A DNA stretch of 64,000 bases, from the NCBI RefSeq assembly GCF_048593235.1, contig NC_133622.1, positions 233,275,198-233,339,197 on the forward strand, given 5' to 3'. Of the stretch, positions 10,817-55,970 are shown piece by piece. The notes under the pieces are model-generated. The model was given only the letters and a program-made list of their open reading frames with translations. It searched no databases and had not been told where the DNA came from. Numbering within the stretch: the first letter of the stretch is position 1; each line of letters begins with the position of its first letter. Made by a program: the position numbers and the translations under genes. This DNA comes from Sminthopsis crassicaudata. Lineage: Eukaryota.

Positions 10817-11377
10817 AAAATCTATCATTATTTATATTGCCAAAGGACAAGGGGAAGTAAGCAGAAAAAAGATTTACAATTAACTATTTTAAAATATGAA
10901 AGTGAAAATCTACACTTAAAAGTAAGAAAAGGAAGAAAAACATATAAAGAATAGAGAAAGTGCTCAGACATCACTTTAAATTCTCAGTTAATCAGTAATA
11001 AGTTATTAAATATTTACCTTGAATGATAGGCTTTTGGATCTAGGTCTACTATTCCTGCCATCCCAAGGAAAACAATATTCATGCTTCTTTTGTATATGCT
11101 CAGGATATCCAGGGAAGACTCAGTGATGGTCCATAGATCCCCTAATATCCTTCATCCCAGAGAGGTCAACAGCTGCTTGACTCACTCTCCTGGGTCCTGA
11201 GACTTCATTCAAGGGTGTAGAAGCCTTGATCTTTTCAATCATCCCCCAATGTTACTCATGATTCCAAGCAAGATAGTGCTATGTGAAGCACAGGGGATAG
11301 CAAGAAAGATGAAAACAACTCTTTGTTCCCCTGAAAAATCCCATTTAATAAGTAAGACCATATGTATATAAGTACAC

Positions 11378-11412
<35 letters not shown>

Positions 11413-11881
11413 CAGGGTATATGCAAAAATCTCTATGCAAATTCTTGCCTTCCCAATGGCAAGAGGGGAAGTAGGCAGAGAGAAAATGTAGAAGTCAAGA
11501 TTTTAAAACATGAAAGTTAAAATGTTCCTGTCTAACTAAGAAAAGATCAAAAAACCTATTAATGGTTCTCTAATTTCACTAGGATTGATTTCATCTTACA
11601 ACAAAGAATGGCTTCCTCTTGATATCATGATGAGTTTTTCCTCAGTGTAGAGCCTCCTGGTGGCTGACCTGGCCTCCTGCTCCCCCCATCCCCCACTGAG
11701 ACCCAGGCCAGTCTGAAAGGCTCTCAGCAAAGCTAAGTGGGCCCCAGGCAAGGAAACTAGACTTGGAAGGAAATCAAAAAGGATTTGCACTTGAACTTCT
11801 GGCTATTCTTGTGGTGATTCCCCAACTGAAAGGAAGGTGGCTCCAAGACCTCCAGAAAACCATCCAAGAACTTGAGAGTTT

Positions 11882-11899
11882 GGGCGCCCAAAGTGGGGC
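11882..11899 (+). promoter_or_regulatory. Retroviral primer-binding site, tRNA-Lys(CUU) type
   Basis: GGGCGCCCAAAGTGGGGC matches 16/18 of TGGCGCCCAACGTGGGGC. Repeated at 16256, 20602, 24962, 29318, 33342, 37706, 42060, 46416, 50780 and 55126. Confidence 0.85.
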
Positions 11900-11931
11900 T
11901 AAGCACCTACATGTGTGACCCAGAAATTAAG

Positions 11932-13066
11932 GTGAGTACACAAACAGGCAAGAAGGAAACTCGGACAAGGGCTAACGTTGTATTTCAGCTGAAATGGGAC
12001 AAGGGTTTAGAAAGGAGCCTTTTCCACCTCAAGGAAAAGGTCTAGAAAGCATGGTGACACTGAAAAATGTTCAAGGTTTTCTGGTAATGGGGTCCAGGTC
12101 AGTGAAGTCTTTGAAATATTAAAAGACACATCTCCTTGGTTCTCTAAGCACAAAGAATTCCATCCAGACCAAGGGAAAGGAGTAGGAGAGCAACTAAGTG
12201 AATATTACAATGAGAATGGTGCTCATTCAATTCCTAAAGAAGCATTTTATACCTACACCTGAATCCAATTGGTCTGAGGAAATGATGTCTGCTCAAGAAG
12301 AAGGAAAAAGAAGAAAGAGCAGGAGGGGAAGGATACTGACAAACTAGGTGAAGAGCCTGAAGAATCAGGTAAGAATGGAGTGAAGTACAATTCTGATGAA
12401 ATTAAGGAGAGTGGTGCTTCCCAGCAGGAGACATTAGGACATTCCCCAACCCCTGACCTACCCCCCACCCCCAGGAACCTATTATGGGTGGAGGGAGAAG
12501 GAGGAGGAGGAGGGGCAGGGACAGAATCAGCATCTCCTGTGAAGCAGTCTGTGACAAGATGGCAAAAGGCAAAAAGGGGGACAGGATATATCTGCTGGAA
12601 TAGAAGAATACCCTGTGAGTGAAGACTTTGATCCTTCAGATCAAGCAGGAGAAGATACACTCCTTTGGATGTGGGGAAAAAAAATCAAGGATTTGAAAAA
12701 GGGCTGTACTCTTTATGGGGCTTCTCATCTTAGGCGAAAATGGTGTTAGAGAATTTGGCTTTTGAAATGGTAACCCCTGGTGATGGCAAATGTATAGCAA
12801 GGGCATGTTGAGAACCTGGAAACAACTTGTTGTGGCTTTTGGGCTATAGTGCACTTTGTAGGATACAAGCCAGGGAGGTCTGACCTGACCAAAGAAAGCA
12901 GGAGATGTTATGGGGCAGAAGTGAAATTGAACCAGGGAAGTGAATGATGGTGTCCTTGCCAGGTACTTAGTACATAATAGAGATTCCCCCCTAAGGCTAC
13001 TGATGGGATTAGCATAGAGTATATCAACTGGGACAATCACAGCCAGACATTCATTCTCTCTCTCAG
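11932..13066 (+). other. Predicted 5'-UTR intron of the ENY2-like gene (removes gag remnant)
   Basis: Consensus donor AAG|GTGAGT just after the PBS; acceptor ttctctctctcAG at 13066 (alternative AG at 13074), ~70 nt upstream of the ATG. Prediction only. Confidence 0.6.
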
Positions 13067-13133
13067 CTTTGTAGTGACTGGAGGCTGGAGGAAAAGAACT
13101 TCACCTCAGAGATTCATTGCATCTCCTAGCATC

Positions 13134-14537
13134 ATGGAGGACTGGAAGAGGCTCAGAGAAGACAGAGCACTGGAGAATGGAGCACAAGCTCTGGGACTGA
13201 GACAGACTTCAAGAAAGAGACCCTGGAGGTCATCCTCCTCCTTGCTACCTCGAAAGCAAGACCCATTACAGAGGCCCTCCACAAAGGGGGGCCGGGCCCA
13301 GGCCCAGAACTGGAAGAGACTCGGCGAAGACAGAGGACTGGAGGCTGGAGAAGAAGCTCTGGGACTTGGACGGATTTCAAGAAAGAGACCCTGTAGGTCC
13401 TCCTCCTCCTTCCTCCACAGAAAGCAAGACCCATGCCAGAGGATCTCCAGAAAGCAGACCCAGGCCCACAACTGGAAGAGACTCGGGGAAGACAGAGGAC
13501 TGGAGGCTGGAGAAGAAGCTCTGGGACTGAGACATTCTTCAAGAAAGAGACTGTGGAGGTCATCCTCCTACTTCCTCCACAGCAACCAAGACCCATTGCA
13601 GAGGCCCTCAACAAAGGGGGCCCAGGCCCAGGCCCAGGCCCAGGCCCAGGCCCAGCATTGGAAGAGACTCGGCGAAGACAGAGGACTGGAGGCTGAAGCA
13701 CAAACTCTCGGACAGAGACAGGTTTCAAGAAAGAGACCCTGGAGGTCCTCCCCATCCTTCCTCCACAGAAAGCAAGATCCATGCCAGAGGATCTCCAGAA
13801 AGCAGACCCAGGCCCACAACTGGAAGAGACTCGGGGAAGACAGAGGACTGGAGGCCGGAGAAGAAGCTCTGGGACTGAGACATTCTTCAAGAAAGAGACT
13901 GTGGAGGTCATCCTCCTACTTCCTCCACAGCAACCAAGACCCATTGCAGAGGCCCTCCACAAAGGGGGCCCGGGCCCAGGCCCAGCACTGGAAGAGACTC
14001 GGGGAAGACAGAGGACTGGAGGCTGAAGCACAAACTCTCGGACAGAGACAGGTTTCAAGAAAGAGACCCTGGAGGTCCTCCTCATCCTTCCTCTACAGAA
14101 AGCAAGACCCTTGCCACAGGATCTCCAGAAATTGGCCCCGGACCCCAGGCAAGGAAACACACTGTGAAGGAGACACTAGACTTTTGGGGACTCCATCACC
14201 TGCCAATTCTCCTGGGGATTGCTCTGATGAAACCAAGAATACCCAAATGAACACAGAGCCACCCATCAAAGCAATTCTTCACCAGAAACTGATAGAAACT
14301 GGTGAACGACAACGACTTCAACAGTGGCTAAGAGCTCAATTGCTCCAGTGTGGTTGGAAAGATCAACTACAAGCTCATTGTCAAGATGTGATTCAGCAAA
14401 AAGGCCTAGAACAGGTGACTGTGGACAACTTGGTAGCAGAACTCACTCTCAAAGGCAGAGAGCTTGTACCCCACAGTTTGATGGAGGAACTTTTCCAAAG
14501 AGTAAAGACCTTCTTGGCTCAGCACGACAGACCTTAA
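13134..14537 (+). CDS. ENY2: ENY2-like chimeric retrogene, copy 1 (467 aa): six Arg/Ser-rich repeats plus C-terminal ENY2/Sus1 domain (14247..14537)
   Basis: The C-terminal 96 aa ([41 protein letters not shown]...EL.QR..TFLAQH) align without gaps to recalled human ENY2, ~60/96 identical, with no introns. The first ATG (ATCATGG, good Kozak) is at 13134; the track start at 13074 is GTG. This is a paralog, not the parental ENY2. Confidence 0.9.
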
Positions 14538-17442: not shown

Positions 17443-17509
17443 CTTTGTAGTGACTGGAGGCTGGAGGAAAAGAACTTCACCTCAGAGATTCATTGCATCT
17501 TCTAGCATC

Positions 17510-18907
17510 ATGGAGGACTGGAAGAGGCTCAGAGAAGACAGAGCACTGGAGAATGGAGCACAAGCTCTGGGACTGAGACAGACTTCAAGAAAGAGACCCT
17601 GGAGGTCATCCTCCTCCTTGCTACCTCGAAAGCAAGACCCATTACAGAGGCCCTCCACAAAGGGGGGCCGGGCCCAGGCCCAGAACTGGAAGAGACTCGG
17701 GCAAGACAGAGGACTGGAGGCTGGAGAAGAAGCTCTGGGACTTGGACGGATTTCAAGAAAGAGACCCTGTAGGTCCTCCTCCTCCTTCCTCCACAGAAAG
17801 CAAGACCCATGCCAGAGGATCTCCAGAAAGCAGACCCAGGCCCACAACTGGAAGAGACTCGGGGAAGACAGAGGACTGGAGGCTGGAGAAGAAGCTCTGG
17901 GACTGAGACATTCTTCAAGAAAGAGACTGTGGAGGTCATCCTCCTACTTCCTCCACAGCAACCAAGACCCATTGCAGAGGCCCTCAACAAAGGGGGCCCA
18001 GGCCCAGGCCCAGGCCCAGGCCCAGCATTGGAAGAGACTCGGGGAAGACAGAGGACTGGAGGCTGAAGCACAAACTCTCGGACAGAGACAGGTTTCAAGA
18101 AAGAGACCCTGGAGGTCCTCCCCATCCTTCCTCCACAGAAAGCAAGATCCATGCCAGAGGATCTCCAGAAAGCAGACCCAGGCCCACAACTGGAAGAGAC
18201 TCGGGGAAGACAGAGGACTGGAGGCCGGAGAAGAAGCTCTGGGACTGAGACATTCTTCAAGAAAGAGACTGTGGAGGTCATCCTCCTACTTCCTCCACAG
18301 CAACCAAGACCCATTGCAGAGGCCCTCCACAAAGGGGGCCCGGGCCCAGGCCCAGCACTGGAAGAGACTCGGGGAAGACAGAGGACTGGAGGCTGAAGCA
18401 CAAACTCTCGGACAGAGACAGGTTTCAAGAAAGAGACCCTGGAGGTCCTCCTCATCCTTCCTCTACAGAAAGCAAGACCCTTGCCACAGGATCTCCAGAA
18501 ATTGGCCCCGGACCCCAGGCAAGGAAACACACTGTGAAGGAGACACTAGACTTTTGGGGACTCCATCACCTGCCAATTCTCCTGGGGATTGCTCTGATGA
18601 AACCAAGAATACCCAAATGAACACAGAGCCACCCATCAAAGCAATTCTTCACCAGAAACTGATAGAAACTGGTGAACGACAACGACTTCAACAGTGGCTA
18701 AGAGCTCAATTGCTCCAGTGTGGTTGGAAAGATCAACTACAAGCTCATTGTCAAGATGTGATTCAGCAAAAAAGCCTAGAACAGGTGACTGTGGACAACT
18801 TGGTAGCAGAACTCACTCTCAAAGGCAGAGAGCTTGTACCCCACAGTTTGATGGAGGAACTTTTCCAAAGAGTAAAGACCTTCTTGGCTCAGCACGACAG
18901 ACCTTAA
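17510..18907 (+). CDS. ENY2: ENY2-like chimeric retrogene, copy 2 (465 aa)
   Basis: Open ORF; private G>S change in the ENY2 domain (QQKSL). Confidence 0.9.
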
Positions 18908-19476
18908 GAGGGGGCCGAACATCAACACCATGTACTTTGACTTCTTGCATCCACAAAGAACAGACATGCCATACCTTTGCAGGGCACTTGCTAAATTAGT
19001 CCTCTTTGGGTAGGATGCATTTTCCGTGTTTTCGTAGGATACTCTGTTGGATCCATTTTTTTCTCCAAGGTCATTTTTACAAGAAATCAATAAGAAAATA
19101 TTTTAAAATAAAAACAAAAATAACATAAAAATAAGAAACTATTTAATAAATTTTAAAATCATAGAATAACTAATCATAAAAATCATAATATAAAATCATA
19201 ACATAAAACATTTAAAATCAAAAGTAAATTTAAAAATTGAATAATCAGAAATACAATAAAAATCATAAATAATAAAACTTTTAAAGTTTTCAAAATTACC
19301 TATTTCCACTCTCATAGTCTATGTTCTCTATTTTCAACTTTGAGCATTGACTATAAATGTTACCATCTTTCCCAAGAAAGATGGCCCATTACTCTTGTAA
19401 CTGTCAGAAACACTGTCCCTTTGTCTCTTGTCCCCTCCCCCCTCAATACTAGCATTTAATAAGAGGATATGTAAAT

Positions 19477-19521
<45 letters not shown>

Positions 19522-20094
19522 CCCAGGGAATAGGCCAAAATGTCTATCCAAATTCTTGCCTTCTTAAAGGGAGAAGGGCATTTAGGCAGAGAGAAAATTT
19601 AGAACTCAATATTATAAAAAACGAAAGTGAAAAGGTTCAGATAAAAGGAATTAAAGGAAGAAAAATATGTACAAAATAGAGAAAGTCCTCAGACATCACT
19701 CTAAATTCTCAATTAATCAGTAATAAGTTATTACATATTTACATTGAATGATAGGCTTTTGGATCTAGGTCTACTTTTCCTGCCATCCCAAGGATAGCAA
19801 TATTCATGCTTCTTTTGTATATGCTCAGGATATCCAGGGAAGACTCAGTGATGGCCCATAGATCCCCTAATATCCTTCATCCCAGAGAGGTCAACAGCTG
19901 CTTGACTCACTCTCCTGGGTCCTGAGATTTCATTCAAGGGTGTAGAAGCCTTGATCTTTTCAATCATCCCCCAATGTTACTCATGATTCCAAGCAAGATA
20001 GTGCTATGTGAAGCACAGGGGATAGCAAGAAAGATGAAAACAACTCTTTGTTCCCCTGAAAAATCCCATTTAATAAGTAAGACCATATGTATAT

Positions 20095-20135
<41 letters not shown>

Positions 20136-20365
20136 GTATATGCAAAAATCTCTATGCAAATTCTTGCCTTCCCAATGGCAAGAGGGGAAGTAGGCAGAGA
20201 GAAAATGTAGAAGTCAAGATTTTAAAACATGAAAGTTAAAATGTTCCTGTCTAACTAAGAAAAGACCAAAAAAACCTATTAATGGTTCTCTAATTTCACT
20301 AGGATTGATTTCATCTTACAACAAAGAATGGCTTCCTCTTGATATCATGATGAGTTTTTCCTCAG

Positions 20366-21788
20366 TGTAGAGCCTCCTGGTGGCTGACCTGGCCTCCTGC
20401 TCCCCCCATCCCCCACTGAGACCCAGGCCAGTCTGAAAGGCTCTCAGCAAAGCTAAGTGGGCCCCAGGCAAGGAAACTAGACTTGGAAGGAAATCAAAAA
20501 GGATTTGCACTTGAACTTCTGGCTATTCTTGTGGTGATTCCCCAACTGAAAGGAAGGTGGCTCCAAGACCTCCAGAAAACCATCCAAGAACTTGAGAGTT
20601 TGGGCGCCCAAAGTGGGGCTAAGCACCTACATGTGTGACCCAGAAATTAAGGTGAGTACACAAACAGGCAAGAAGGAAACTCGGACAAGGGTTAACGTTG
20701 TATTTCAGCTGAAATGGGACAGGGGTTTAGAAAGGAGCCTTTTCCACCTCAAGGAAAAGGTCTAGAAAGCATGGTGACACTGAAAAATGTTCAAGGTTTT
20801 CTGGTAATGGGGTCCAGGTCAGTGAAGTCTTTGAAATATTAAAAGACACATCTCCTTGGTTCTCTAAGCACAAAGAATTCCATCCAGACCAAGGGAAAGG
20901 AGTAGGAGAGCAACTAAGTGAATATTACAATGAGAATGGTGCTCATTCAATTCCTAAAGAAGCATTTTATACCTACACCTGAATCCAATTGGTCTGAGGA
21001 AATGATGTCTGCTCAAGAAGAAGGAAAAAGAAGAAAGAGCAGGAGGGGAAGGATACTGACAAACTAGGTGAAGAGCCTGAAGAATCAGGTAAGAATGGAG
21101 TGAAGTACAATTCTGATGAAATTAAGGAGAGTGGTGCTTCCCAGCAGGAGACATTAGGACATTCCCCAACCCCCCTGACCTACCCCCCACCCCCAGGAAC
21201 CTATTATGGGTGGAGGGAGAAGGAGGAGGAGGAGGGGCAGGGACAGAATCAGCATCTCCTGTGAAGCAGTCTGTGACAAGATGGCAAAAGGCAAAAAGGG
21301 GGACAGGATATATCTGCTGGAATAGAAGAATACCCTGTGAGTGAAGACTTTGATCCTTCAGATCAAGCAGGAGAAGATACACTCCTTTGGATGTGGGGAA
21401 AAAAAATCAAGGATTTGAAAAAGGGCTGTACTCTTTATGGGGCTTCTCATCTTAGGCGAAAATGGTGTTAGAGAATTTGGCTTTTGAAATGGTAACCCCT
21501 GGTGATGGCAAATGTATAGCAAGGGCATGTTGAGAACCTGGAAACAACTTGTTGTGGCTTTTGGGCTATAGTGCACTTTGTAGGATACAAGCCAGGGAGG
21601 TCTGACCTGACCTAAGAAAGCAGGAGATGTTATGGGGCAGAAGTGAAATTGAACCAGGGAAGTGAATGATGGTGTCCTTGCCAGGTACTTAGTACATAAT
21701 AGAGATTCCCCCCTAAGGCTACTGATGGGATTAGCATAGAGTATATCAACTGGGACAATCACAGCCAGACATTCATTCTCTCTCTCAG
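20366..21788 (+). mobile_element. ERVK-like 5' remnant, unit 3
   Basis: Near-identical to unit 1; PBS at 20602. Confidence 0.85.
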
Positions 21789-21855
21789 CTTTGTAGTGAC
21801 TGGAGGCTGGAGGAAAAGAACTTCACCTCAGAGATTCATTGCATCTCCTAGCATC

Positions 21856-26148: not shown

Positions 26149-26215
26149 CTTTGTAGTGACTGGAGGCTGGAGGAAAAGAACTTCACCTCAGAGATTCATT
26201 GCATCTCCTAGCATC

Positions 26216-27613
26216 ATGGAGGACTGGAAGAGGCTCAGAGAAGACAGAGCACTGGAGAATGGAGCACAAGCTCTGGGACTGAGACAGACTTCAAGAAAGA
26301 GACCCTGGAGGTCATCCTCCTCCTTGCTACCTCGAAAGCAAGACCCATTACAGAGGCCCTCCACAAAGGGGGGCCGGGCCCAGGCCCAGAACTGGAAGAG
26401 ACTCGGGCAAGACAGAGGACTGGAGGCTGGAGAAGAAGCTCTGGGACTTGGACGGATTTCAAGAAAGAGACCCTGTAGGTCCTCCTCCTCCTTCCTCCAC
26501 AGAAAGCAAGACCCATGCCAGAGGATCTCCAGAAAGCAGACCCAGGCCCACAACTGGAAGAGACTCGGGGAAGACAGAGGACTGGAGGCTGGAGAAGAAG
26601 CTCTGGGACTGAGACATTCTTCAAGAAAGAGACTGTGGAGGTCATCCTCCTACTTCCTCCACAGCAACCAAGACCCATTGCAGAGGCCCTCAACAAAGGG
26701 GGCCCAGGCCCAGGCCCAGGCCCAGGCCCAGCATTGGAAGAGACTCGGCGAAGACAGAGGACTGGAGGCTGAAGCACAAACTCTCGGACAGAGACAGGTT
26801 TCAAGAAAGAGACCCTGGAGGTCCTCCCCATCCTTCCTCCACAGAAAGCAAGATCCATGCCAGAGGATCTCCAGAAAGCAGACCCAGGCCCACAACTGGA
26901 AGAGACTCGGGGAAGACAGAGGACTGGAGGCCGGAGAAGAAGCTCTGGGACTGAGACATTCTTCAAGAAAGAGACTGTGGAGGTCATCCTCCTACTTCCT
27001 CCACAGCAACCAAGACCCATTGCAGAGGCCCTCCACAAAGGGGGCCCGGGCCCAGGCCCAGCACTGGAAGAGACTCGGGGAAGACAGAGGACTGGAGGCT
27101 GAAGCACAAACTCTCGGACAGAGACAGGTTTCAAGAAAGAGACCCTGGAGGTCCTCCTCATCCTTCCTCTACAGAAAGCAAGACCCTTGCCACAGGATCT
27201 CCAGAAATTGGCCCCGGACCCCAGGCAAGGAAACACACTGTGAAGGAGACACTAGACTTTTGGGGACTCCATCACCTGCCAATTCTCCTGGGGATTGCTC
27301 TGATGAAACCAAGAATACCCAAATGAACACAGAGCCACCCATCAAAGCAATTCTTCACCAGAAACTGATAGAAACTGGTGAACGACAACGACTTCAACAG
27401 TGGCTAAGAGCTCAATTGCTCCAGTGTGGTTGGAAAGATCAACTACAAGCTCATTGTCAAGATGTGATTCAGCAAAAAGGCCTAGAACAGGTGACTGTGG
27501 ACAACTTGGTAGCAGAACTCACTCTCAAAGGCAGAGAGCTTGTACCCCACAGTTTGATGGAGGAACTTTTCCAAAGAGTAAAGACCTTCTTGGCTCAGCA
27601 CGACAGACCTTAA
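26216..27613 (+). CDS. ENY2: ENY2-like chimeric retrogene, copy 4 (465 aa)
   Basis: Open ORF, consensus protein. Confidence 0.9.
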
Positions 27614-28182
27614 GAGGGGGCCGAACATCAACACCATGTACTTTGACTTCTTGCATCCACAAAGAACAGACATGCCATACCTTTGCAGGGCACTTGCTAA
27701 ATTAGTCCTCTTTGGGTAGGATGCATTTTCCGTGTTTTCGTAGGATACTCTGTTGGATCCATTTTTTTCTCCAAGGTCATTTTTACAAGAAATCAATAAG
27801 AAAATATTTTAAAATAAAAACAAAAATAACATAAAAATAAGAAACTATTTAATAAATTTTAAAATCATAGAATAACTAATCATAAAAATCATAATATAAA
27901 ATCATAACATAAAACATTTAAAATCAAAAGTAAATTTAAAAATTGAATAATCAGAAATACAATAAAAATCATAAATAATAAAACTTTTAAAGTTTTCAAA
28001 ATTACCTATTTCCACTCTCATAGTCTATGTTCTCTATTTTCAACTTTGAGCATTGACTATAAATGTTACCATCTTTCCCAAGAAAGATGGCCCATTACTC
28101 TTGTAACTGTCAGAAACACTGTCCCTTTGTCTCTTGTCCCCTCCCCCCTCAATACTAGCATTTAATAAGAGGATATGTAAAT

Positions 28183-28233
<51 letters not shown>

Positions 28234-28806
28234 CCCAGGGAATAGGCCAAAATGTCTATCCAAATTCTTGCCTTCTTAAAGGGAGAAGGGCATTTAGGCA
28301 GAGAGAAAATTTAGAACTCAATATTATAAAAAACGAAAGTGAAAAGGTTCAGATAAAAGGAATTAAAGGAAGAAAAATATGTACAAAATAGAGAAAGTCC
28401 TCAGACATCACTCTAAATTCTCAATTAATCAGTAATAAGTTATTACATATTTACATTGAATGATAGGCTTTTGGATCTAGGTCTACTTTTCCTGCCATCC
28501 CAAGGATAGCAATATTCATGCTTCTTTTGTATATGCTCAGGATATCCAGGGAAGACTCAGTGATGGCCCATAGATCCCCTAATATCCTTCATCCCAGAGA
28601 GGTCAACAGCTGCTTGACTCACTCTCCTGGGTCCTGAGATTTCATTCAAGGGTGTAGAAGCCTTGATCTTTTCAATCATCCCCCAATGTTACTCATGATT
28701 CCAAGCAAGATAGTGCTATGTGAAGCACAGGGGATAGCAAGAAAGATGAAAACAACTCTTTGTTCCCCTGAAAAATCCCATTTAATAAGTAAGACCATAT
28801 GTATAT

Positions 28807-28851
<45 letters not shown>

Positions 28852-29081
28852 GTATATGCAAAAATCTCTATGCAAATTCTTGCCTTCCCAATGGCAAGAG
28901 GGGAAGTAGGCAGAGAGAAAATGTAGAAGTCAAGATTTTAAAACATGAAAGTTAAAATGTTCCTGTCTAACTAAGAAAAGACCAAAAAAACCTATTAATG
29001 GTTCTCTAATTTCACTAGGATTGATTTCATCTTACAACAAAGAATGGCTTCCTCTTGATATCATGATGAGTTTTTCCTCAG

Positions 29082-30504
29082 TGTAGAGCCTCCTGGTGGC
29101 TGACCTGGCCTCCTGCTCCCCCCATCCCCCACTGAGACCCAGGCCAGTCTGAAAGGCTCTCAGCAAAGCTAAGTGGGCCCCAGGCAAGGAAACTAGACTT
29201 GGAAGGAAATCAAAAAGGATTTGCACTTGAACTTCTGGCTATTCTTGTGGTGATTCCCCAACTGAAAGGAAGGTGGCTCCAAGACCTCCAGAAAACCATC
29301 CAAGAACTTGAGAGTTTGGGCGCCCAAAGTGGGGCTAAGCACCTACATGTGTGACCCAGAAATTAAGGTGAGTACACAAACAGGCAAGAAGGAAACTCGG
29401 ACAAGGGTTAACGTTGTATTTCAGCTGAAATGGGACAGGGGTTTAGAAAGGAGCCTTTTCCACCTCAAGGAAAAGGTCTAGAAAGCATGGTGACACTGAA
29501 AAATGTTCAAGGTTTTCTGGTAATGGGGTCCAGGTCAGTGAAGTCTTTGAAATATTAAAAGACACATCTCCTTGGTTCTCTAAGCACAAAGAATTCCATC
29601 CAGACCAAGGGAAAGGAGTAGGAGAGCAACTAAGTGAATATTACAATGAGAATGGTGCTCATTCAATTCCTAAAGAAGCATTTTATACCTACACCTGAAT
29701 CCAATTGGTCTGAGGAAATGATGTCTGCTCAAGAAGAAGGAAAAAGAAGAAAGAGCAGGAGGGGAAGGATACTGACAAACTAGGTGAAGAGCCTGAAGAA
29801 TCAGGTAAGAATGGAGTGAAGTACAATTCTGATGAAATTAAGGAGAGTGGTGCTTCCCAGCAGGAGACATTAGGACATTCCCCAACCCCCCTGACCTACC
29901 CCCCACCCCCAGGAACCTATTATGGGTGGAGGGAGAAGGAGGAGGAGGAGGGGCAGGGACAGAATCAGCATCTCCTGTGAAGCAGTCTGTGACAAGATGG
30001 CAAAAGGCAAAAAGGGGGACAGGATATATCTGCTGGAATAGAAGAATACCCTGTGAGTGAAGACTTTGATCCTTCAGATCAAGCAGGAGAAGATACACTC
30101 CTTTGGATGTGGGGAAAAAAAATCAAGGATTTGAAAAAGGGCTGTACTCTTTATGGGGCTTCTCATCTTAGGCGAAAATGGTGTTAGAGAATTTGGCTTT
30201 TGAAATGGTAACCCCTGGTGATGGCAAATGTATAGCAAGGGCATGTTGAGAACCTGGAAACAACTTGTTGTGGCTTTTGGGCTATAGTGCACTTTGTAGG
30301 ATACAAGCCAGGGAGGTCTGACCTGACCAAAGAAAGCAGGAGATGTTATGGGGCAGAAGTGAAATTGAACCAGGGAAGTGAATGATGGTGTCCTTGCCAG
30401 GTACTTAGTACATAATAGAGATTCCCCCCTAAGGCTACTGATGGGATTAGCATAGAGTATATCAACTGGGACAATCACAGCCAGACATTCATTCTCTCTC
30501 TCAG
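29082..30504 (+). mobile_element. ERVK-like 5' remnant, unit 5
   Basis: Near-identical to unit 1; PBS at 29318. Confidence 0.85.
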
Positions 30505-37190: not shown

Positions 37191-37239
<49 letters not shown>

Positions 37240-37469: not shown

Positions 37470-38892
37470 TGTAGAGCCTCCTGGTGGCTGACCTGGCCTC
37501 CTGCTCCCCCCATCCCCCACTGAGACCCAGGCCAGTCTGAAAGGCTCTCAGCAAAGCTAAGTGGGCCCCAGGCAAGGAAACTAGACTTGGAAGGAAATCA
37601 AAAAGGATTTGCACTTGAACTTCTGGCTATTCTTGTGGTGATTCCCCAACTGAAAGGAAGGTGGCTCCAAGACCTCCAGAAAACCATCCAAGAACTTGAG
37701 AGTTTGGGCGCCCAAAGTGGGGCTAAGCACCTACATGTGTGACCCAGAAATTAAGGTGAGTACACAAACAGGCAAGAAGGAAACTCGGACAAGGGTTAAC
37801 GTTGTATTTCAGCTGAAATGGGACAGGGGTTTAGAAAGGAGCCTTTTCCACCTCAAGGAAAAGGTCTAGAAAGCATGGTGACACTGAAAAATGTTCAAGG
37901 TTTTCTGGTAATGGGGTCCAGGTCAGTGAAGTCTTTGAAATATTAAAAGACACATCTCCTTGGTTCTCTAAGCACAAAGAATTCCATCCAGACCAAGGGA
38001 AAGGAGTAGGAGAGCAACTAAGTGAATATTACAATGAGAATGGTGCTCATTCAATTCCTAAAGAAGCATTTTATACCTACACCTGAATCCAATTGGTCTG
38101 AGGAAATGATGTCTGCTCAAGAAGAAGGAAAAAGAAGAAAGAGCAGGAGGGGAAGGATACTGACAAACTAGGTGAAGAGCCTGAAGAATCAGGTAAGAAT
38201 GGAGTGAAGTACAATTCTGATGAAATTAAGGAGAGTGGTGCTTCCCAGCAGGAGACATTAGGACATTCCCCAACCCCCCTGACCTACCCCCCACCCCCAG
38301 GAACCTATTATGGGTGGAGGGAGAAGGAGGAGGAGGAGGGGCAGGGACAGAATCAGCATCTCCTGTGAAGCAGTCTGTGACAAGATGGCAAAAGGCAAAA
38401 AGGGGGACAGGATATATCTGCTGGAATAGAAGAATACCCTGTGAGTGAAGACTTTGATCCTTCAGATCAAGCAGGAGAAGATACACTCCTTTGGATGTGG
38501 GGAAAAAAAATCAAGGATTTGAAAAAGGGCTGTACTCTTTATGGGGCTTCTCATCTTAGGCGAAAATGGTGTTAGAGAATTTGGCTTTTGAAATGGTAAC
38601 CCCTGGTGATGGCAAATGTATAGCAAGGGCATGTTGAGAACCTGGAAACAACTTGTTGTGGCTTTTGGGCTATAGTGCACTTTGTAGGATACAAGCCAGG
38701 GAGGTCTGACCTGACCAAAGAAAGCAGGAGATGTTATGGGGCAGAAGTGAAATTGAACCAGGGAAGTGAATGATGGTGTCCTTGCCAGGTACTTAGTACA
38801 TAATAGAGATTCCCCCCTAAGGCTACTGATGGGATTAGCATAGAGTATATCAACTGGGACAATCACAGCCAGACATTCATTCTCTCTCTCAG
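37470..38892 (+). mobile_element. ERVK-like 5' remnant, unit 7
   Basis: Near-identical to unit 1; PBS at 37706. Confidence 0.85.
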
Positions 38893-38959
38893 CTTTGTAG
38901 TGACTGGAGGCTGGAGGAAAAGAACTTCACCTCAGAGATTCATTGCATCTCCTAGCATC

Positions 38960-43246: not shown

Positions 43247-43313
43247 CTTTGTAGTGACTGGAGGCTGGAGGAAAAGAACTTCACCTCAGAGATTCATTGC
43301 ATCTCCTAGCATC

Positions 43314-44711
43314 ATGGAGGACTGGAAGAGGCTCAGAGAAGACAGAGCACTGGAGAATGGAGCACAAGCTCTGGGACTGAGACAGACTTCAAGAAAGAGA
43401 CCCTGGAGGTCATCCTCCTCCTTGCTACCTCGAAAGCAAGACCCATTACAGAGGCCCTCCACAAAGGGGGGCCGGGCCCAGGCCCAGAACTGGAAGAGAC
43501 TCGGGCAAGACAGAGGACTGGAGGCTGGAGAAGAAGCTCTGGGACTTGGACGGATTTCAAGAAAGAGACCCTGTAGGTCCTCCTCCTCCTTCCTCCACAG
43601 AAAGCAAGACCCATGCCAGAGGATCTCCAGAAAGCAGACCCAGGCCCACAACTGGAAGAGACTCGGGGAAGACAGAGGACTGGAGGCTGGAGAAGAAGCT
43701 CTGGGACTGAGACATTCTTCAAGAAAGAGACTGTGGAGGTCATCCTCCTACTTCCTCCACAGCAACCAAGACCCATTGCAGAGGCCCTCAACAAAGGGGG
43801 CCCAGGCCCAGGCCCAGGCCCAGGCCCAGCATTGGAAGAGACTCGGCGAAGACAGAGGACTGGAGGCTGAAGCACAAACTCTCGGACAGAGACAGGTTTC
43901 AAGAAAGAGACCCTGGAGGTCCTCCCCATCCTTCCTCCACAGAAAGCAAGATCCATGCCAGAGGATCTCCAGAAAGCAGACCCAGGCCCACAACTGGAAG
44001 AGACTCGGGGAAGACAGAGGACTGGAGGCCGGAGAAGAAGCTCTGGGACTGAGACATTCTTCAAGAAAGAGACTGTGGAGGTCATCCTCCTACTTCCTCC
44101 ACAGCAACCAAGACCCATTGCAGAGGCCCTCCACAAAGGGGGCCCGGGCCCAGGCCCAGCACTGGAAGAGACTCGGGGAAGACAGAGGACTGGAGGCTGA
44201 AGCACAAACTCTCGGACAGAGACAGGTTTCAAGAAAGAGACCCTGGAGGTCCTCCTCATCCTTCCTCTACAGAAAGCAAGACCCTTGCCACAGGATCTCC
44301 AGAAATTGGCCCCGGACCCCAGGCAAGGAAACACACTGTGAAGGAGACACTAGACTTTTGGGGACTCCATCACCTGCCAATTCTCCTGGGGATTGCTCTG
44401 ATGAAACCAAGAATACCCAAATGAACACAGAGCCACCCATCAAAGCAATTCTTCACCAGAAACTGATAGAAACTGGTGAACGACAACGACTTCAACAGTG
44501 GCTAAGAGCTCAATTGCTCCAGTGTGGTTGGAAAGATCAACTACAAGCTCATTGTCAAGATGTGATTCAGCAAAAAGGCCTAGAACAGGTGACTGTGGAC
44601 AACTTGGTAGCAGAACTCACTCTCAAAGGCAGAGAGCTTGTACCCCACAGTTTGATGGAGGAACTTTTCCAAAGAGTAAAGACCTTCTTGGCTCAGCACG
44701 ACAGACCTTAA
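43314..44711 (+). CDS. ENY2: ENY2-like chimeric retrogene, copy 8 (465 aa)
   Basis: Open ORF, consensus protein. Confidence 0.9.
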
Positions 44712-45280
44712 GAGGGGGCCGAACATCAACACCATGTACTTTGACTTCTTGCATCCACAAAGAACAGACATGCCATACCTTTGCAGGGCACTTGCTAAAT
44801 TAGTCCTCTTTGGGTAGGATGCATTTTCCGTGTTTTCGTAGGATACTCTGTTGGATCCATTTTTTTCTCCAAGGTCATTTTTACAAGAAATCAATAAGAA
44901 AATATTTTAAAATAAAAACAAAAATAACATAAAAATAAGAAACTATTTAATAAATTTTAAAATCATAGAATAACTAATCATAAAAATCATAATATAAAAT
45001 CATAACATAAAACATTTAAAATCAAAAGTAAATTTAAAAATTGAATAATCAGAAATACAATAAAAATCATAAATAATAAAACTTTTAAAGTTTTCAAAAT
45101 TACCTATTTCCACTCTCATAGTCTATGTTCTCTATTTTCAACTTTGAGCATTGACTATAAATGTTACCATCTTTCCCAAGAAAGATGGCCCATTACTCTT
45201 GTAACTGTCAGAAACACTGTCCCTTTGTCTCTTGTCCCCTCCCCCCTCAATACTAGCATTTAATAAGAGGATATGTAAAT

Positions 45281-45331
<51 letters not shown>

Positions 45332-45904
45332 CCCAGGGAATAGGCCAAAATGTCTATCCAAATTCTTGCCTTCTTAAAGGGAGAAGGGCATTTAGGCAGA
45401 GAGAAAATTTAGAACTCAATATTATAAAAAACGAAAGTGAAAAGGTTCAGATAAAAGGAATTAAAGGAAGAAAAATATGTACAAAATAGAGAAAGTCCTC
45501 AGACATCACTCTAAATTCTCAATTAATCAGTAATAAGTTATTACATATTTACATTGAATGATAGGCTTTTGGATCTAGGTCTACTTTTCCTGCCATCCCA
45601 AGGATAGCAATATTCATGCTTCTTTTGTATATGCTCAGGATATCCAGGGAAGACTCAGTGATGGCCCATAGATCCCCTAATATCCTTCATCCCAGAGAGG
45701 TCAACAGCTGCTTGACTCACTCTCCTGGGTCCTGAGATTTCATTCAAGGGTGTAGAAGCCTTGATCTTTTCAATCATCCCCCAATGTTACTCATGATTCC
45801 AAGCAAGATAGTGCTATGTGAAGCACAGGGGATAGCAAGAAAGATGAAAACAACTCTTTGTTCCCCTGAAAAATCCCATTTAATAAGTAAGACCATATGT
45901 ATAT

Positions 45905-45949
<45 letters not shown>

Positions 45950-46179
45950 GTATATGCAAAAATCTCTATGCAAATTCTTGCCTTCCCAATGGCAAGAGGG
46001 GAAGTAGGCAGAGAGAAAATGTAGAAGTCAAGATTTTAAAACATGAAAGTTAAAATGTTCCTGTCTAACTAAGAAAAGACCAAAAAAACCTATTAATGGT
46101 TCTCTAATTTCACTAGGATTGATTTCATCTTACAACAAAGAATGGCTTCCTCTTGATATCATGATGAGTTTTTCCTCAG

Positions 46180-47602
46180 TGTAGAGCCTCCTGGTGGCTG
46201 ACCTGGCCTCCTGCTCCCCCCATCCCCCACTGAGACCCAGGCCAGTCTGAAAGGCTCTCAGCAAAGCTAAGTGGGCCCCAGGCAAGGAAACTAGACTTGG
46301 AAGGAAATCAAAAAGGATTTGCACTTGAACTTCTGGCTATTCTTGTGGTGATTCCCCAACTGAAAGGAAGGTGGCTCCAAGACCTCCAGAAAACCATCCA
46401 AGAACTTGAGAGTTTGGGCGCCCAAAGTGGGGCTAAGCACCTACATGTGTGACCCAGAAATTAAGGTGAGTACACAAACAGGCAAGAAGGAAACTCGGAC
46501 AAGGGTTAACGTTGTATTTCAGCTGAAATGGGACAGGGGTTTAGAAAGGAGCCTTTTCCACCTCAAGGAAAAGGTCTAGAAAGCATGGTGACACTGAAAA
46601 ATGTTCAAGGTTTTCTGGTAATGGGGTCCAGGTCAGTGAAGTCTTTGAAATATTAAAAGACACATCTCCTTGGTTCTCTAAGCACAAAGAATTCCATCCA
46701 GACCAAGGGAAAGGAGTAGGAGAGCAACTAAGTGAATATTACAATGAGAATGGTGCTCATTCAATTCCTAAAGAAGCATTTTATACCTACACCTGAATCC
46801 AATTGGTCTGAGGAAATGATGTCTGCTCAAGAAGAAGGAAAAAGAAGAAAGAGCAGGAGGGGAAGGATACTGACAAACTAGGTGAAGAGCCTGAAGAATC
46901 AGGTAAGAATGGAGTGAAGTACAATTCTGATGAAATTAAGGAGAGTGGTGCTTCCCAGCAGGAGACATTAGGACATTCCCCAACCCCCCTGACCTACCCC
47001 CCACCCCCAGGAACCTATTATGGGTGGAGGGAGAAGGAGGAGGAGGAGGGGCAGGGACAGAATCAGCATCTCCTGTGAAGCAGTCTGTGACAAGATGGCA
47101 AAAGGCAAAAAGGGGGACAGGATATATCTGCTGGAATAGAAGAATACCCTGTGAGTGAAGACTTTGATCCTTCAGATCAAGCAGGAGAAGATACACTCCT
47201 TTGGATGTGGGGAAAAAAAATCAAGGATTTGAAAAAGGGCTGTACTCTTTATGGGGCTTCTCATCTTAGGCGAAAATGGTGTTAGAGAATTTGGCTTTTG
47301 AAATGGTAACCCCTGGTGATGGCAAATGTATAGCAAGGGCATGTTGAGAACCTGGAAACAACTTGTTGTGGCTTTTGGGCTATAGTGCACTTTGTAGGAT
47401 ACAAGCCAGGGAGGTCTGACCTGACCAAAGAAAGCAGGAGATGTTATGGGGCAGAAGTGAAATTGAACCAGGGAAGTGAATGATGGTGTCCTTGCCAGGT
47501 ACTTAGTACATAATAGAGATTCCCCCCTAAGGCTACTGATGGGATTAGCATAGAGTATATCAACTGGGACAATCACAGCCAGACATTCATTCTCTCTCTC
47601 AG
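46180..47602 (+). mobile_element. ERVK-like 5' remnant, unit 9
   Basis: Near-identical to unit 1; PBS at 46416. Confidence 0.85.
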
Positions 47603-47669
47603 CTTTGTAGTGACTGGAGGCTGGAGGAAAAGAACTTCACCTCAGAGATTCATTGCATCTCCTAGCATC

Positions 47670-49067
47670 ATGGAGGACTGGAAGAGGCTCAGAGAAGACA
47701 GAGCACTGGAGAATGGAGCACAAGCTCTGGGACTGAGACAGACTTCAAGAAAGAGACCCTGGAGGTCATCCTCCTCCTTGCTACCTCGAAAGCAAGACCC
47801 ATTACAGAGGCCCTCCACAAAGGGGGGCCGGGCCCAGGCCCAGAACTGGAAGAGACTCGGGCAAGACAGAGGACTGGAGGCTGGAGAAGAAGCTCTGGGA
47901 CTTGGACGGATTTCAAGAAAGAGACCCTGTAGGTCCTCCTCCTCCTTCCTCCACAGAAAGCAAGACCCATGCCAGAGGATCTCCAGAAAGCAGACCCAGG
48001 CCCACAACTGGAAGAGACTCGGGGAAGACAGAGGACTGGAGGCTGGAGAAGAAGCTCTGGGACTGAGACATTCTTCAAGAAAGAGACTGTGGAGGTCATC
48101 CTCCTACTTCCTCCACAGCAACCAAGACCCATTGCAGAGGCCCTCAACAAAGGGGGCCCAGGCCCAGGCCCAGGCCCAGGCCCAGCATTGGAAGAGACTC
48201 GGCGAAGACAGAGGACTGGAGGCTGAAGCACAAACTCTCGGACAGAGACAGGTTTCAAGAAAGAGACCCTGGAGGTCCTCCCCATCCTTCCTCCACAGAA
48301 AGCAAGATCCATGCCAGAGGATCTCCAGAAAGCAGACCCAGGCCCACAACTGGAAGAGACTCGGGGAAGACAGAGGACTGGAGGCCGGAGAAGAAGCTCT
48401 GGGACTGAGACATTCTTCAAGAAAGAGACTGTGGAGGTCATCCTCCTACTTCCTCCACAGCAACCAAGACCCATTGCAGAGGCCCTCCACAAAGGGGGCC
48501 CGGGCCCAGGCCCAGCACTGGAAGAGACTCGGGGAAGACAGAGGACTGGAGGCTGAAGCACAAACTCTCGGACAGAGACAGGTTTCAAGAAAGAGACCCT
48601 GGAGGTCCTCCTCATCCTTCCTCTACAGAAAGCAAGACCCTTGCCACAGGATCTCCAGAAATTGGCCCCGGACCCCAGGCAAGGAAACACACTGTGAAGG
48701 AGACACTAGACTTTTGGGGACTCCATCACCTGCCAATTCTCCTGGGGATTGCTCTGATGAAACCAAGAATACCCAAATGAACACAGAGCCACCCATCAAA
48801 GCAATTCTTCACCAGAAACTGATAGAAACTGGTGAACGACAACGACTTCAACAGTGGCTAAGAGCTCAATTGCTCCAGTGTGGTTGGAAAGATCAACTAC
48901 AAGCTCATTGTCAAGATGTGATTCAGCAAAAAGGCCTAGAACAGGTGACTGTGGACAACTTGGTAGCAGAACTCACTCTCAAAGGCAGAGAGCTTGTACC
49001 CCACAGTTTGATGGAGGAACTTTTCCAAAGAGTAAAGACCTTCTTGGCTCAGCACGACAGACCTTAA
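47670..49067 (+). CDS. ENY2: ENY2-like chimeric retrogene, copy 9 (465 aa)
   Basis: Open ORF, consensus protein. Confidence 0.9.
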
Positions 49068-53431: not shown

Positions 53432-54000
53432 GAGGGGGCCGAACATCAACACCATGTACTTTGACTTCTTGCATCCACAAAGAACAGACATGCCATACCT
53501 TTGCAGGGCACTTGCTAAATTAGTCCTCTTTGGGTAGGATGCATTTTCCGTGTTTTCGTAGGATACTCTGTTGGATCCATTTTTTTCTCCAAGGTCATTT
53601 TTACAAGAAATCAATAAGAAAATATTTTAAAATAAAAACAAAAATAACATAAAAATAAGAAACTATTTAATAAATTTTAAAATCATAGAATAACTAATCA
53701 TAAAAATCATAATATAAAATCATAACATAAAACATTTAAAATCAAAAGTAAATTTAAAAATTGAATAATCAGAAATACAATAAAAATCATAAATAATAAA
53801 ACTTTTAAAGTTTTCAAAATTACCTATTTCCACTCTCATAGTCTATGTTCTCTATTTTCAACTTTGAGCATTGACTATAAATGTTACCATCTTTCCCAAG
53901 AAAGATGGCCCATTACTCTTGTAACTGTCAGAAACACTGTCCCTTTGTCTCTTGTCCCCTCCCCCCTCAATACTAGCATTTAATAAGAGGATATGTAAAT

Positions 54001-54043
<43 letters not shown>

Positions 54044-54616
54044 CCCAGGGAATAGGCCAAAATGTCTATCCAAATTCTTGCCTTCTTAAAGGGAGAAGGG
54101 CATTTAGGCAGAGAGAAAATTTAGAACTCAATATTATAAAAAACGAAAGTGAAAAGGTTCAGATAAAAGGAATTAAAGGAAGAAAAATATGTACAAAATA
54201 GAGAAAGTCCTCAGACATCACTCTAAATTCTCAATTAATCAGTAATAAGTTATTACATATTTACATTGAATGATAGGCTTTTGGATCTAGGTCTACTTTT
54301 CCTGCCATCCCAAGGATAGCAATATTCATGCTTCTTTTGTATATGCTCAGGATATCCAGGGAAGACTCAGTGATGGCCCATAGATCCCCTAATATCCTTC
54401 ATCCCAGAGAGGTCAACAGCTGCTTGACTCACTCTCCTGGGTCCTGAGATTTCATTCAAGGGTGTAGAAGCCTTGATCTTTTCAATCATCCCCCAATGTT
54501 ACTCATGATTCCAAGCAAGATAGTGCTATGTGAAGCACAGGGGATAGCAAGAAAGATGAAAACAACTCTTTGTTCCCCTGAAAAATCCCATTTAATAAGT
54601 AAGACCATATGTATAT

Positions 54617-54659
<43 letters not shown>

Positions 54660-54889
54660 GTATATGCAAAAATCTCTATGCAAATTCTTGCCTTCCCAAT
54701 GGCAAGAGGGGAAGTAGGCAGAGAGAAAATGTAGAAGTCAAGATTTTAAAACATGAAAGTTAAAATGTTCCTGTCTAACTAAGAAAAGACCAAAAAAACC
54801 TATTAATGGTTCTCTAATTTCACTAGGATTGATTTCATCTTACAACAAAGAATGGCTTCCTCTTGATATCATGATGAGTTTTTCCTCAG

Positions 54890-55970
54890 TGTAGAGCCTC
54901 CTGGTGGCTGACCTGGCCTCCTGCTCCCCCCATCCCCCACTGAGACCCAGGCCAGTCTGAAAGGCTCTCAGCAAAGCTAAGTGGGCCCCAGGCAAGGAAA
55001 CTAGACTTGGAAGGAAATCAAAAAGGATTTGCACTTGAACTTCTGGCTATTCTTGTGGTGATTCCCCAACTGAAAGGAAGGTGGCTCCAAGACCTCCAGA
55101 AAACCATCCAAGAACTTGAGAGTTTGGGCGCCCAAAGTGGGGCTAAGCACCTACATGTGTGACCCAGAAATTAAGGTGAGTACACAAACAGGCAAGAAGG
55201 AAACTCGGACAAGGGCTAACGTTGTATTTCAGCTGAAATGGGACAGGGGTTTAGAAAGGAGCCTTTTCCACCTCAAGGAAAAGGTCTAGAAAGCATGGTG
55301 ACACTGAAAAATGTTCAAGGTTTTCTGGTAATGGGGTCCAGGTCAGTGAAGTCTTTGAAATATTAAAAGACACATCTCCTTGGTTCTCTAAGCACAAAGA
55401 ATTCCATCCAGACCAAGGGAAAGGAGTAGGAGAGCAACTAAGTGAATATTACAATGAGAATGGTGCTCATTCAATTCCTAAAGAAGCATTTTATACCTAC
55501 ACCTGAATCCAATTGGTCTGAGGAAATGATGTCTGCTCAAGAAGAAGGAAAAAGAAGAAAGAGCAGGAGGGGAAGGATACTGACAAACTAGGTGAAGAGC
55601 CTGAAGAATCAGGTAAGAATGGAGTGAAGTACAATTCTGATGAAATTAAGGAGAGTGGTGCTTCCCAGCAGGAGACATTAGGACATTCCCCAACCCCCCT
55701 GACCTACCCCCCACCCCCAGGAACCTATTATGGGTGGAGGGAGAAGGAGGAGGAGGAGGGGCAGGGACAGAATCAGCATCTCCTGTGAAGCAGTCTGTGA
55801 CAAGATGGCAAAAGGCAAAAAGGGGGACAGGATATATCTGCTGGAATAGAAGAATACCCTGTGAGTGAAGACTTTGATCCTTCAGATCAAGCAGGAGAAG
55901 ATACACTCCTTTGGATGTGGGGAAAAAAAAATCAAGGATTTGGAAAAAGGGCTGTACTCCTTATGGGGCT
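54890..55970 (+). mobile_element. ERVK-like 5' remnant of truncated unit 11 (ends inside gag CA; no ENY2 ORF)
   Basis: PBS at 55126. Identity to the unit stops abruptly after ...ttatggggct (55970). Confidence 0.9.

Follow-up and report, generated by a model that had tools for sequence, protein, structure and literature searches.

Introduction

ENY2/Sus1 is a protein of about 100 amino acids (aa), encoded by a five-exon gene, and a subunit shared by the SAGA deubiquitinase (DUB) module and TREX-2. It joins transcription, histone H2B deubiquitination and mRNA export, and belongs to the most conserved small proteins of eukaryotes. The canonical protein binds the CID helix of GANP/Sac3 and the N-terminal helix of ATXN7L3/Sgf11. 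Among gene families with a comparable genomic organization, mouse Slx/Sly and the genes of the primate Y palindromes are ampliconic, palindrome-associated and germline-related, and some retrogenes are known to recruit retroelement sequence as a promoter or 5' untranslated region (5'UTR). Here, we analyse a tandem array of ENY2-derived genes in the genome of Sminthopsis crassicaudata, the fat-tailed dunnart. The array is contained in a 64,000-nucleotide (nt) stretch of DNA, referred to below as the window, which is located near 233.28 Mb on sequence CM109186.1 (258.1 Mb; assembly GCA_048593235.1); positions are counted from the first letter of the window. Another locus of this genome, L002, overlaps the window at positions 8617–28907 only and served solely for coordinates.

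Lineage-specific retrocopies of ENY2 are common in mammals, where they are plain, highly conserved and weakly expressed copies; in the Drosophila pair e(y)2/e(y)2b, the germline-specialised paralogue keeps TREX-2 and loses incorporation into the DUB module (PMC12611072). The premise of a first-pass annotation of the window, that ENY2 is normally a single-copy gene, is not reliable in view of these retrocopies. Neither the above article nor its supplements mention marsupials, tandem arrays or chimeric open reading frames (ORFs), and our literature search returned nothing that pairs ENY2 with marsupials or amplicons, and no description of the family was found.

The dunnart array protein shares with canonical ENY2/Sus1 the full-length EnY2 domain, the five-helix fold and all residues conserved across the family. 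It differs in its length of 465 aa, in the possession of a basic repeat extension, in the absence of introns, in sequence (63% identity), in being multicopy and in its fast evolution. Similar to the mammalian ENY2 retrocopies and e(y)2b, it is an ENY2 duplicate confined to one lineage, and the dunnart copy is intronless too; unlike the mammalian retrocopies (PMC12611072), it is fused to orphan repeats, fast-diverging and amplified. The locus resembles Slx/Sly and the Y palindromes in that its copies are very highly identical, are duplicated in tandem and inverted fashion and have repeatedly increased in number in particular lineages, but it is autosomal and its genes occupy the spacer between the inverted arms. 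As in retrogenes that have recruited retroelement sequence, the gene is located directly behind a sense-oriented fragment of an endogenous retrovirus (ERV), composed of a segment resembling a long terminal repeat (LTR), a leader and a part of gag, and this position is conserved across genera. The one mRNA-derived dunnart copy, however, starts downstream of the ERV fragment. The locus is thus best described as what looks like an ENY2 retrogene turned chimeric, fast-evolving and ampliconic, which resembles an autosomal ampliconic germline family and lacks the sex linkage of Slx/Sly. We assign a probability of about 0.62 to the reading that the array represents a dasyurid-specific protein-coding family, recently amplified in S. 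crassicaudata.

Results

Organization of the array

Self-BLAST of the window revealed a tandem array of 10.4 units of ~4.35 kb each, which extends from position 10842 to 55970. Ten open plus-strand ORFs at ~4.35-kb spacing were present in the ORF listing, with frames opening at 13074, 17450, 21796, 26156, 30512, 34536, 38900, 43254, 47610, and 51974. The unit length is 4346–4376 bp, with the exception of unit 5 (4024 bp). A partial unit, ~1.9% diverged, forms the left end of the array (10842–13073), while the last unit is truncated at 55970. Units 1–10 differ from each other by only 0–2.1 substitutions per kb. The ten near-identical ORFs and the amplification reported in the first-pass annotation were therefore recovered, with ten ORF-bearing units. 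The coding sequences (CDSs), with lengths counted from the conserved ATG, are the following:

13134–14537, plus strand: CDS of copy 1, 467 aa, two extra residues in an AQ run
17510–18907, plus strand: CDS of copy 2, 465 aa
21856–23253, plus strand: CDS of copy 3, 465 aa
26216–27613, plus strand: CDS of copy 4, 465 aa, majority protein (repeats, 26216–27205; linker, 27206–27322; ENY2 domain, 27323–27610; all plus strand)
30572–31639, plus strand: CDS of copy 5, 355 aa
34596–35993, plus strand: CDS of copy 6, 465 aa
38960–40357, plus strand: CDS of copy 7, 465 aa
43314–44711, plus strand: CDS of copy 8, 465 aa (unit 8 equals unit 4)
47670–49067, plus strand: CDS of copy 9, 465 aa
52034–53431, plus strand: CDS of copy 10, 465 aa

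Thus, eight copies encode proteins of 465 aa, and identical proteins are encoded by six of the ten (copy 4 and copies 6–10). Eight codon columns vary within the array, three of them non-synonymously and five synonymously. Copy 5 has an in-frame deletion of 330 bp, by which two 56-aa repeats were lost. Copy 2 alone carries a Gly to Ser replacement at residue 422 (region 18781–18783), a position at which at least 90% of the aligned ENY2 family members share the glycine. The start codon of all ten copies is in good context (A at −3, G at +4). Since copy 5 lost two repeats and the repeat number differs in Sarcophilus, the coding minisatellite itself recombines.

Not a single base differs between units 4 and 8 across 4356 bp (26156–30511 and 43254–47609), and unit 6 (34536–38899) differs from them only by 8 bp of a microsatellite. 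Such identity could stem from a duplication of higher order, from very recent conversion or from polishing of the assembly. The close similarity of the units in general points to very recent unequal crossing-over or continuing homogenisation.

The ENY2 domain

The C-terminal 96 aa constitute a complete EnY2 domain (Pfam PF10163; E = 3e-23; 82.3 bits against a cut-off of 27), which covers positions 2–83 of the profile (82 of 83). In comparison with human ENY2 (4dhx_B; E = 6.6e-37), 59 of 93 residues are identical (63%) and 37% differ. The AlphaFold2 (AF2) model of this part displays five helices (residues 373–386, 389–403, 406–421, 428–441, and 445–462) with a predicted local distance difference test score (pLDDT) of ~90. 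The best Foldseek match of the model was ENY2 from the ENY2:GANP complex 4dhx (TM score 0.93; root-mean-square deviation 1.2 Å), followed by Sus1 in structures of the SAGA DUB module and TREX-2. In a 60-sequence ENY2-family alignment, 16 positions reach a conservation of at least 90%, and the majority protein keeps every one of them. These include the invariant W406 and P444 and 14 others at 90% or more.

The exon structure was compared with that of the tarsier ENY2 locus (L005). In this eutherian locus, the same residues are encoded by four coding exons distributed across 7.2 kb, whereas the sequence in the window is contiguous. Because the coding sequence is uninterrupted where eutherian ENY2 has introns, the ENY2 domain of the array is most simply interpreted as a processed copy. 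The chimeric, intronless, ENY2-derived gene proposed in the first-pass annotation is in line with this result. UTR homology to the tarsier locus was undetectable, and an A-rich 3' tract is the sole surviving mark of retroposition at the founding insertion on the chromosome-6 homologue (see below). Given that an intronless chimera of 465 aa stands against a single-domain ENY2 of ~100 aa, the chimeric protein is an ENY2-derived paralogue and not an orthologue.

The N-terminal repeat region

The N-terminal extension of ~370 residues is composed of six repeats of 47–60 aa (~56 aa) and an acidic linker of 39 aa. At the DNA level, the repeats have a period of 168 bp with a higher order of 342 bp. 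The repeat region is rich in Arg, Ser and Lys, with an isoelectric point of 11.5 and a net charge of ~+40. The alignment supplied to AF2 was made up of the window proteins and search matches and has no depth in the repeat region, where residues 20–370 were modelled with a pLDDT of ~40; the repeat tail is probably disordered.

Relatives of the repeats were not detected in Pfam, PDB and 1.84 billion representative proteins (HMMER; the best 150 matches all concern the ENY2 part only). Nor did the repeats display similarity to the ERV and L1 elements of the Sarcophilus locus described below, to the rest of the window or to the eutherian ENY2 locus. The long antisense ORF that overlaps the repeats lacks conservation between loci, and the antisense ORFs of this region were rejected as artefacts.

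Current annotation

The NCBI annotation contains a row of 96-aa genes at the array, with the RefSeq name 'ENY2-like', and public protein sets include only models of 96–130 aa. No long homologue was retrieved by a word search with the full-length protein, which was saturated by low-complexity words, or by a protein search with the linker plus domain. An exact look-up of the 465-aa protein found it absent from the record. The long ORF is therefore undescribed and unannotated, and only its ENY2 part is annotated. The claim of an undescribed family applies to the long ORF; it does not extend to the 96-aa ENY2 part, which NCBI already calls in each copy.

One of the NCBI models, a 130-aa ENY2-like protein of Sarcophilus (P0006; GCA_902635505.1), has a gene range of 100 kb. 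Such a range presupposes a predicted splice that links the end of the ENY2 ORF with an exon far away, and it may reflect transcript evidence in the devil.

Relatives in other dasyurids and a retrocopy in the dunnart

The counterpart of the array in Antechinus flavipes (L003) is located on CM028222.1, at 238.4 Mb of 264,590,327 bp. In Table 2 of the corresponding publication, this length is that of chromosome 6, while the X chromosome (chromosome 7) comprises 86.6 Mb (PMC9290055). In Sarcophilus, the counterpart (L004) was found at 239.2 Mb of a 267-Mb record. Window positions 2–2060 share 82% identity, in inverted orientation, with the Antechinus locus. Because both the flank and the relative position match Antechinus chromosome 6, the array locus is autosomal. 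The founding locus on the chromosome-6 homologue predates the split of Sminthopsis, Antechinus and Sarcophilus. The family was found only in dasyurids and seems to be specific to them, in agreement with the lineage specificity suggested at first pass.

At the Antechinus locus, an intact ORF of 455 aa with the same architecture comes after a truncated copy of 117 aa. In Sarcophilus, an intact 491-aa ORF and a short form of 227 codons are present. The same ERV-containing spacer precedes the full-length ORF in both species. The chimeric ORF is thus intact at the corresponding locus of both Antechinus and Sarcophilus.

Further copies were detected at the distal end of Antechinus chromosome 3 (636,717,922 bp, in agreement with the table of PMC9290055), where a two-gene block occurs twice, at 636.10 and 636.31 Mb (L006 and L007). 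The two blocks, each a truncated plus a full-length gene, have opposite orientations and are separated by 212 kb. Identity between them is 98.9% over more than 10 kb, and 95.7% to the chromosome-6 block. This represents an independent expansion in Antechinus by segmental and inverted duplication.

The dunnart itself possesses an additional single copy (L001) on a 478.7-Mb record of chromosome-4 size. It is 89% identical to the array unit and contains an intact ORF of 455 aa. Homology to the unit is confined to the ORF, the ~200 nt upstream of it and the complete 3'UTR. The copy is flanked by a 13-bp direct repeat, AAAAGTTACTTCA, which was matched in 3 of 2000 shuffles, and has an A run at its end. 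Such a target-site duplication together with an A-tail is typical of mRNA that was inserted by L1-type retroposition. L001 is therefore a processed copy of an already chimeric transcript. This heritable retrocopy indicates that the chromosome-6 gene was once transcribed in the germline or early embryo, as an unspliced mRNA of ~2.1 kb. The 5' end of L001 maps near 21590 and equivalent positions, at the junction between ERV and non-ERV sequence. Retrocopies are often 5'-truncated, so this end defines a minimum only.

In sum, intact full-length ORFs are present at L003, L006, and L007 of Antechinus, L004 of Sarcophilus, and L001 of Sminthopsis. Copy number was gained by three routes, namely tandem duplication, segmental/inverted duplication, and retroposition, and the gains in Sminthopsis and Antechinus are independent.

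Selection on the chimeric ORF

Neutral evolution was simulated by random mutation of the array CDS, with substitutions alone. The probability that the frame survived was 0.012 for K = 0.06, 6.5e-4 for K = 0.11, and 5e-5 for K = 0.2. The real copies diverge by 11–20%, and all length differences among the full-length ORFs preserve the frame. Because the simulated frame survival at such divergence is P ≤ 0.001, the open frames at the five further loci are hardly explained by neutral survival.

The ratio of non-synonymous to synonymous substitution rates (dN/dS) between the array and the retrocopy L001 is 0.51 overall and 0.20 in the ENY2 part. Pairwise values among the three full-length Antechinus paralogues are 0.42–0.50. 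Between genera, dN/dS is 0.7–1.2 in the repeats and 0.44–1.3 in the ENY2 part. We read these high values as a sign that the protein probably evolves fast while still being required.

The ERV fragment and the untranslated regions

The anatomy of the repeated block is described for an example unit (17450–21795), which contains the following features in addition to the CDS of copy 2; the last of them continues into the next unit:

18908–19297, plus strand: 3'UTR of copy 2, ~390 nt, A-rich, with AATAAA at 19271; delimited by the end of L001 homology and the A-tail
19680–20595, plus strand: putative LTR-like segment, ~0.9 kb, in gene sense
20596–20713, plus strand: retroviral leader with motifs resembling a primer-binding site (PBS) and a GT splice donor
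20714–21599, plus strand: broken 5' gag, from matrix p10-like sequence to the N-terminal half of capsid p24
21590–21855, plus strand: putative 5'UTR of copy 3, with the minimal mRNA 5' end near 21590 as placed by alignment of the L001 5' end

The poly(A) site is probably located near 19297, where the homology to L001 ends and the A-tail of this retrocopy begins. The 3'UTR is followed by a microsatellite-bearing spacer of ~0.4 kb. The LTR-like segment is considered a discrete element because three junctions in L003 and L004 bring its end directly against its own start. The PBS-like motif is situated within ~5 nt after this segment. Together with the splice-donor-like motif and the gag ATG, it is conserved across the three genera. 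Scans of the window and loci for tRNAs and Rfam families were empty.

The gag remnant matches Gag_p10 (PF02337) with 28.5 bits against a cut-off of 23.9. The N-terminal fragment of capsid p24 is present in all ten units and is 56% identical to that of a fuller ERV in L004. The remnant is 3'-truncated, and its reading frame is broken by two or more frame changes and two or more in-frame stops. Homology to pro or pol was not found anywhere in the window, and domain scans turned up no retroviral domain beyond gag, with no search aimed at env and ~0.4 kb of each unit left unassigned. The retroviral remnant thus has the appearance of a 5' ERV fragment rather than a betaretrovirus-like provirus. It is sense-oriented, ends ~260 nt before the gene ATG and contains LTR-like segment, leader and broken gag in each unit, which agrees with the retroviral leader noticed in the first-pass annotation. 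The order of ERV and gene is conserved in the three genera. The remaining part of gag was sought downstream of the gene poly(A) site, and no homology was found. Insertion of the gene into an ERV is unsupported, since gag does not continue past this site.

A polypyrimidine tract and AG occur ~60 nt upstream of the ATG (~21785–21797 and equivalent positions in each unit). The acceptor-like AG dinucleotides are restricted to the Sminthopsis array; L001, Antechinus and Sarcophilus bear other bases at these sites.

Within the 5'UTR, a motif of ~70 bp (~21700–21800) is present once in the array, twice in L001 (8760–8880) as well as in Sarcophilus, and five times or more in Antechinus (L003, 14608–15000); it constitutes a 5'UTR minisatellite. 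Downstream of the Sarcophilus genes, positions 12320–19838 of L004 contain an L1 ORF1-like ORF and the fuller ERV mentioned above. The latter comprises long gag (p24), protease and reverse transcriptase (RT) ORFs, is related to the gag fragment of the unit, and was used as a comparator only.

Inverted arms and surroundings of the array

The array is flanked by two inverted arms:

5790–9810, plus strand: left inverted arm, with a masked N run (7814–8139) inside
56423–64000, minus strand: right inverted arm, with masked N runs (58234–58972) inside, reaching the window end

The arms (5790–9810 versus 64000–56423) are 97–98% identical, except for the inner 1 kb with only 82% identity. The right arm reaches the edge of the window, and the arm length is at least 4 kb. 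The array occupies a 46.6-kb spacer between the arms. The nesting of the genes in a palindrome, as first proposed, is therefore correct with regard to the flanking inverted arms, but the genes are in the spacer and not within the arms.

The right arm only carries a LINE-like (long interspersed nuclear element) insertion of 2.3 kb (59981–62274). It contains an RT ORF of 622 codons (60049–61917) with a partial RVT_1 domain. The 3' part of the insertion (61539–62276) recurs in inverted orientation at 62939–63676, beyond the arm block 62275–62921.

The masked N runs of the two arms (7814–8139 and 58234–58972) are at mirror positions. Long ORFs across these runs (7784–8782, plus strand; 57976–59103, minus strand) were discarded as genes, since they represent translated N and CT-rich low-complexity sequence. 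The inner stretches of the arms (8781–10228 and 56423–57425) contain a diverged copy of the gene 3'UTR and A-rich tail. Positions 9707–10228 are ~73% identical to unit positions 1538–2071, which suggests that an older copy of the gene was formerly located at the arm edges. Finally, a 79-bp tandem repeat (2.4 copies; 56004–56192) directly follows the right end of the array and precedes the right arm.

Discussion

In the reading that we prefer, that of a dasyurid-specific protein-coding family, the family would have been born from a processed ENY2 copy, which then gained an N-terminal extension of ~370 residues. The founding locus would be that on the chromosome-6 homologue, directly downstream of the sense-oriented ERV fragment. 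In S. crassicaudata, the 4.35-kb block of gene and ERV may have been multiplied very recently to ten copies, likely by unequal crossing-over with continuing homogenisation. As partners whose long helices the ENY2 domain is predicted to wrap, we envisage GANP of TREX-2 and/or ATXN7L3 of the SAGA deubiquitinase module. The protein would be nuclear, and its basic disordered tail may add nuclear targeting or binding to nucleic acids or chromatin. Two roles are conceivable, either that of an ENY2 variant specialised for the germline or that of a competitor by which ENY2 partners are titrated; more copies would mean a higher dose of the protein.

Several observations weigh against this reading. The N-terminal region is without homologues and is represented by a low-confidence model only, and the NCBI pipeline picked only the 96-aa ORF. 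About half of the canonical ENY2 lysines are replaced, mostly by glutamine, so that partner binding may have changed, and four residues are deleted from the ENY2 domain of the full-length copy in Sarcophilus. The dN/dS values between genera are compatible with weak constraint, although misaligned non-orthologous repeats may inflate them. Finally, the identity of units could partly reflect assembly polishing.

The strongest of the other proposals, which we regard as possible but less likely than not, is that the gene is wired to the ERV. The sense LTR would serve as the promoter, the splice donor of the leader, near 20651, would be joined to the acceptor upstream of the ORF, and unit amplification would be the amplification of an LTR-driven gene. 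The first-pass annotation had called the array ERV-wired. The upstream ERV fragment stands, with LTR-like segment, PBS-like motif, GT donor-like motif and gag ATG all in gene sense and kept in three genera, and with an acceptor-like polypyrimidine/AG site ~60 nt before the ATG whose AGs are specific to the Sminthopsis array. The wiring itself is unproven: the evidence for a transcript end, which comes from L001, is at the 3' edge of the ERV and not in the LTR. This retrocopy starts at the 3' gag edge and runs colinear with the genomic sequence through the acceptor-like site, which indicates neither an LTR start nor splicing. L001 may, however, be 5'-truncated, and it predates the array-specific AG changes, so that an LTR-driven spliced transcript is possible in the array. 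The ERV fragment is co-amplified in every unit, as this proposal expects, but physical linkage by itself would explain that too.

More doubtful is the idea that the family encodes a germline-expressed ENY2 antagonist or mimic engaged in continuing genetic conflict, with the basic tail taking the domain that binds TREX-2/SAGA to chromatin or RNA. One candidate conflict would be autosomal transmission distortion with its counteracting suppression, another the control of transcripts from retroelements; both are speculation. If true, a conflict would explain the independent bursts of copy number in Sminthopsis (array and retrocopy) and Antechinus (inter-chromosomal and inverted duplications), as well as fast protein evolution with an open frame and possibly a new LTR-driven spliced transcript. 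The germline modulator envisaged at first pass gains indirect support, as far as germline transcription is concerned, from the retrocopy L001; its role in conflict or drive remains speculation.

We consider it unlikely that the array is a neutral by-product, whereby a retrogene in decay was duplicated by the instability of its repeat-rich region and a lucky ORF is still open in its copies only because these are young. The region is indeed rich in microsatellites, LINE and ERV fragments, the units are so alike (0–2 substitutions per kb) that ten copies amount to a single observation, and dN/dS between genera is near 1. This does not agree with the five further full-length ORFs in three genera, which are intact at 11–20% divergence (simulated P ≤ 0.001), with length differences that all preserve the frame, or with the dN/dS of 0.4–0.5 among recent paralogues.

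Marginally less probable again is an assembly artefact, with a true copy number far below or above ten. Such arrays pose difficulties for assembly, no difference separates units 4 and 8, and unit 6 deviates from them only by 8 bp of a microsatellite. A gap-free assembly of chromosome 6 has been described (PMC13408496). Most units are nevertheless distinguishable by substitutions, by microsatellite length (4346–4376 bp) or, in copy 5, by the 330-bp deletion; the NCBI genes are equally spaced on the same record, and Antechinus and Sarcophilus also have more than one copy at the locus.

A sex-chromosome ampliconic family of the Slx/Sly type, the analogy drawn in the first-pass annotation from near-identical copies associated with inverted repeats, can practically be dismissed, since the 258.1-Mb host record matches, by flank and position, the autosomal chromosome 6 of Antechinus (264,590,327 bp) and not an X of 86.6 Mb, and other copies are on sequences of chromosome 3 and 4 size.

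If the preferred reading of a dasyurid-specific protein-coding family is correct, an ENY2 fold joined to orphan, protamine-like basic repeats has been kept open through the dasyurid radiation while evolving fast. The fat-tailed dunnart is becoming the laboratory marsupial. With the long ORF missing from public protein sets, expression and proteome studies would overlook the family. The dunnart array and its relatives would offer a natural case of new-gene birth, in which retroposition, a coding minisatellite and amplification act together.

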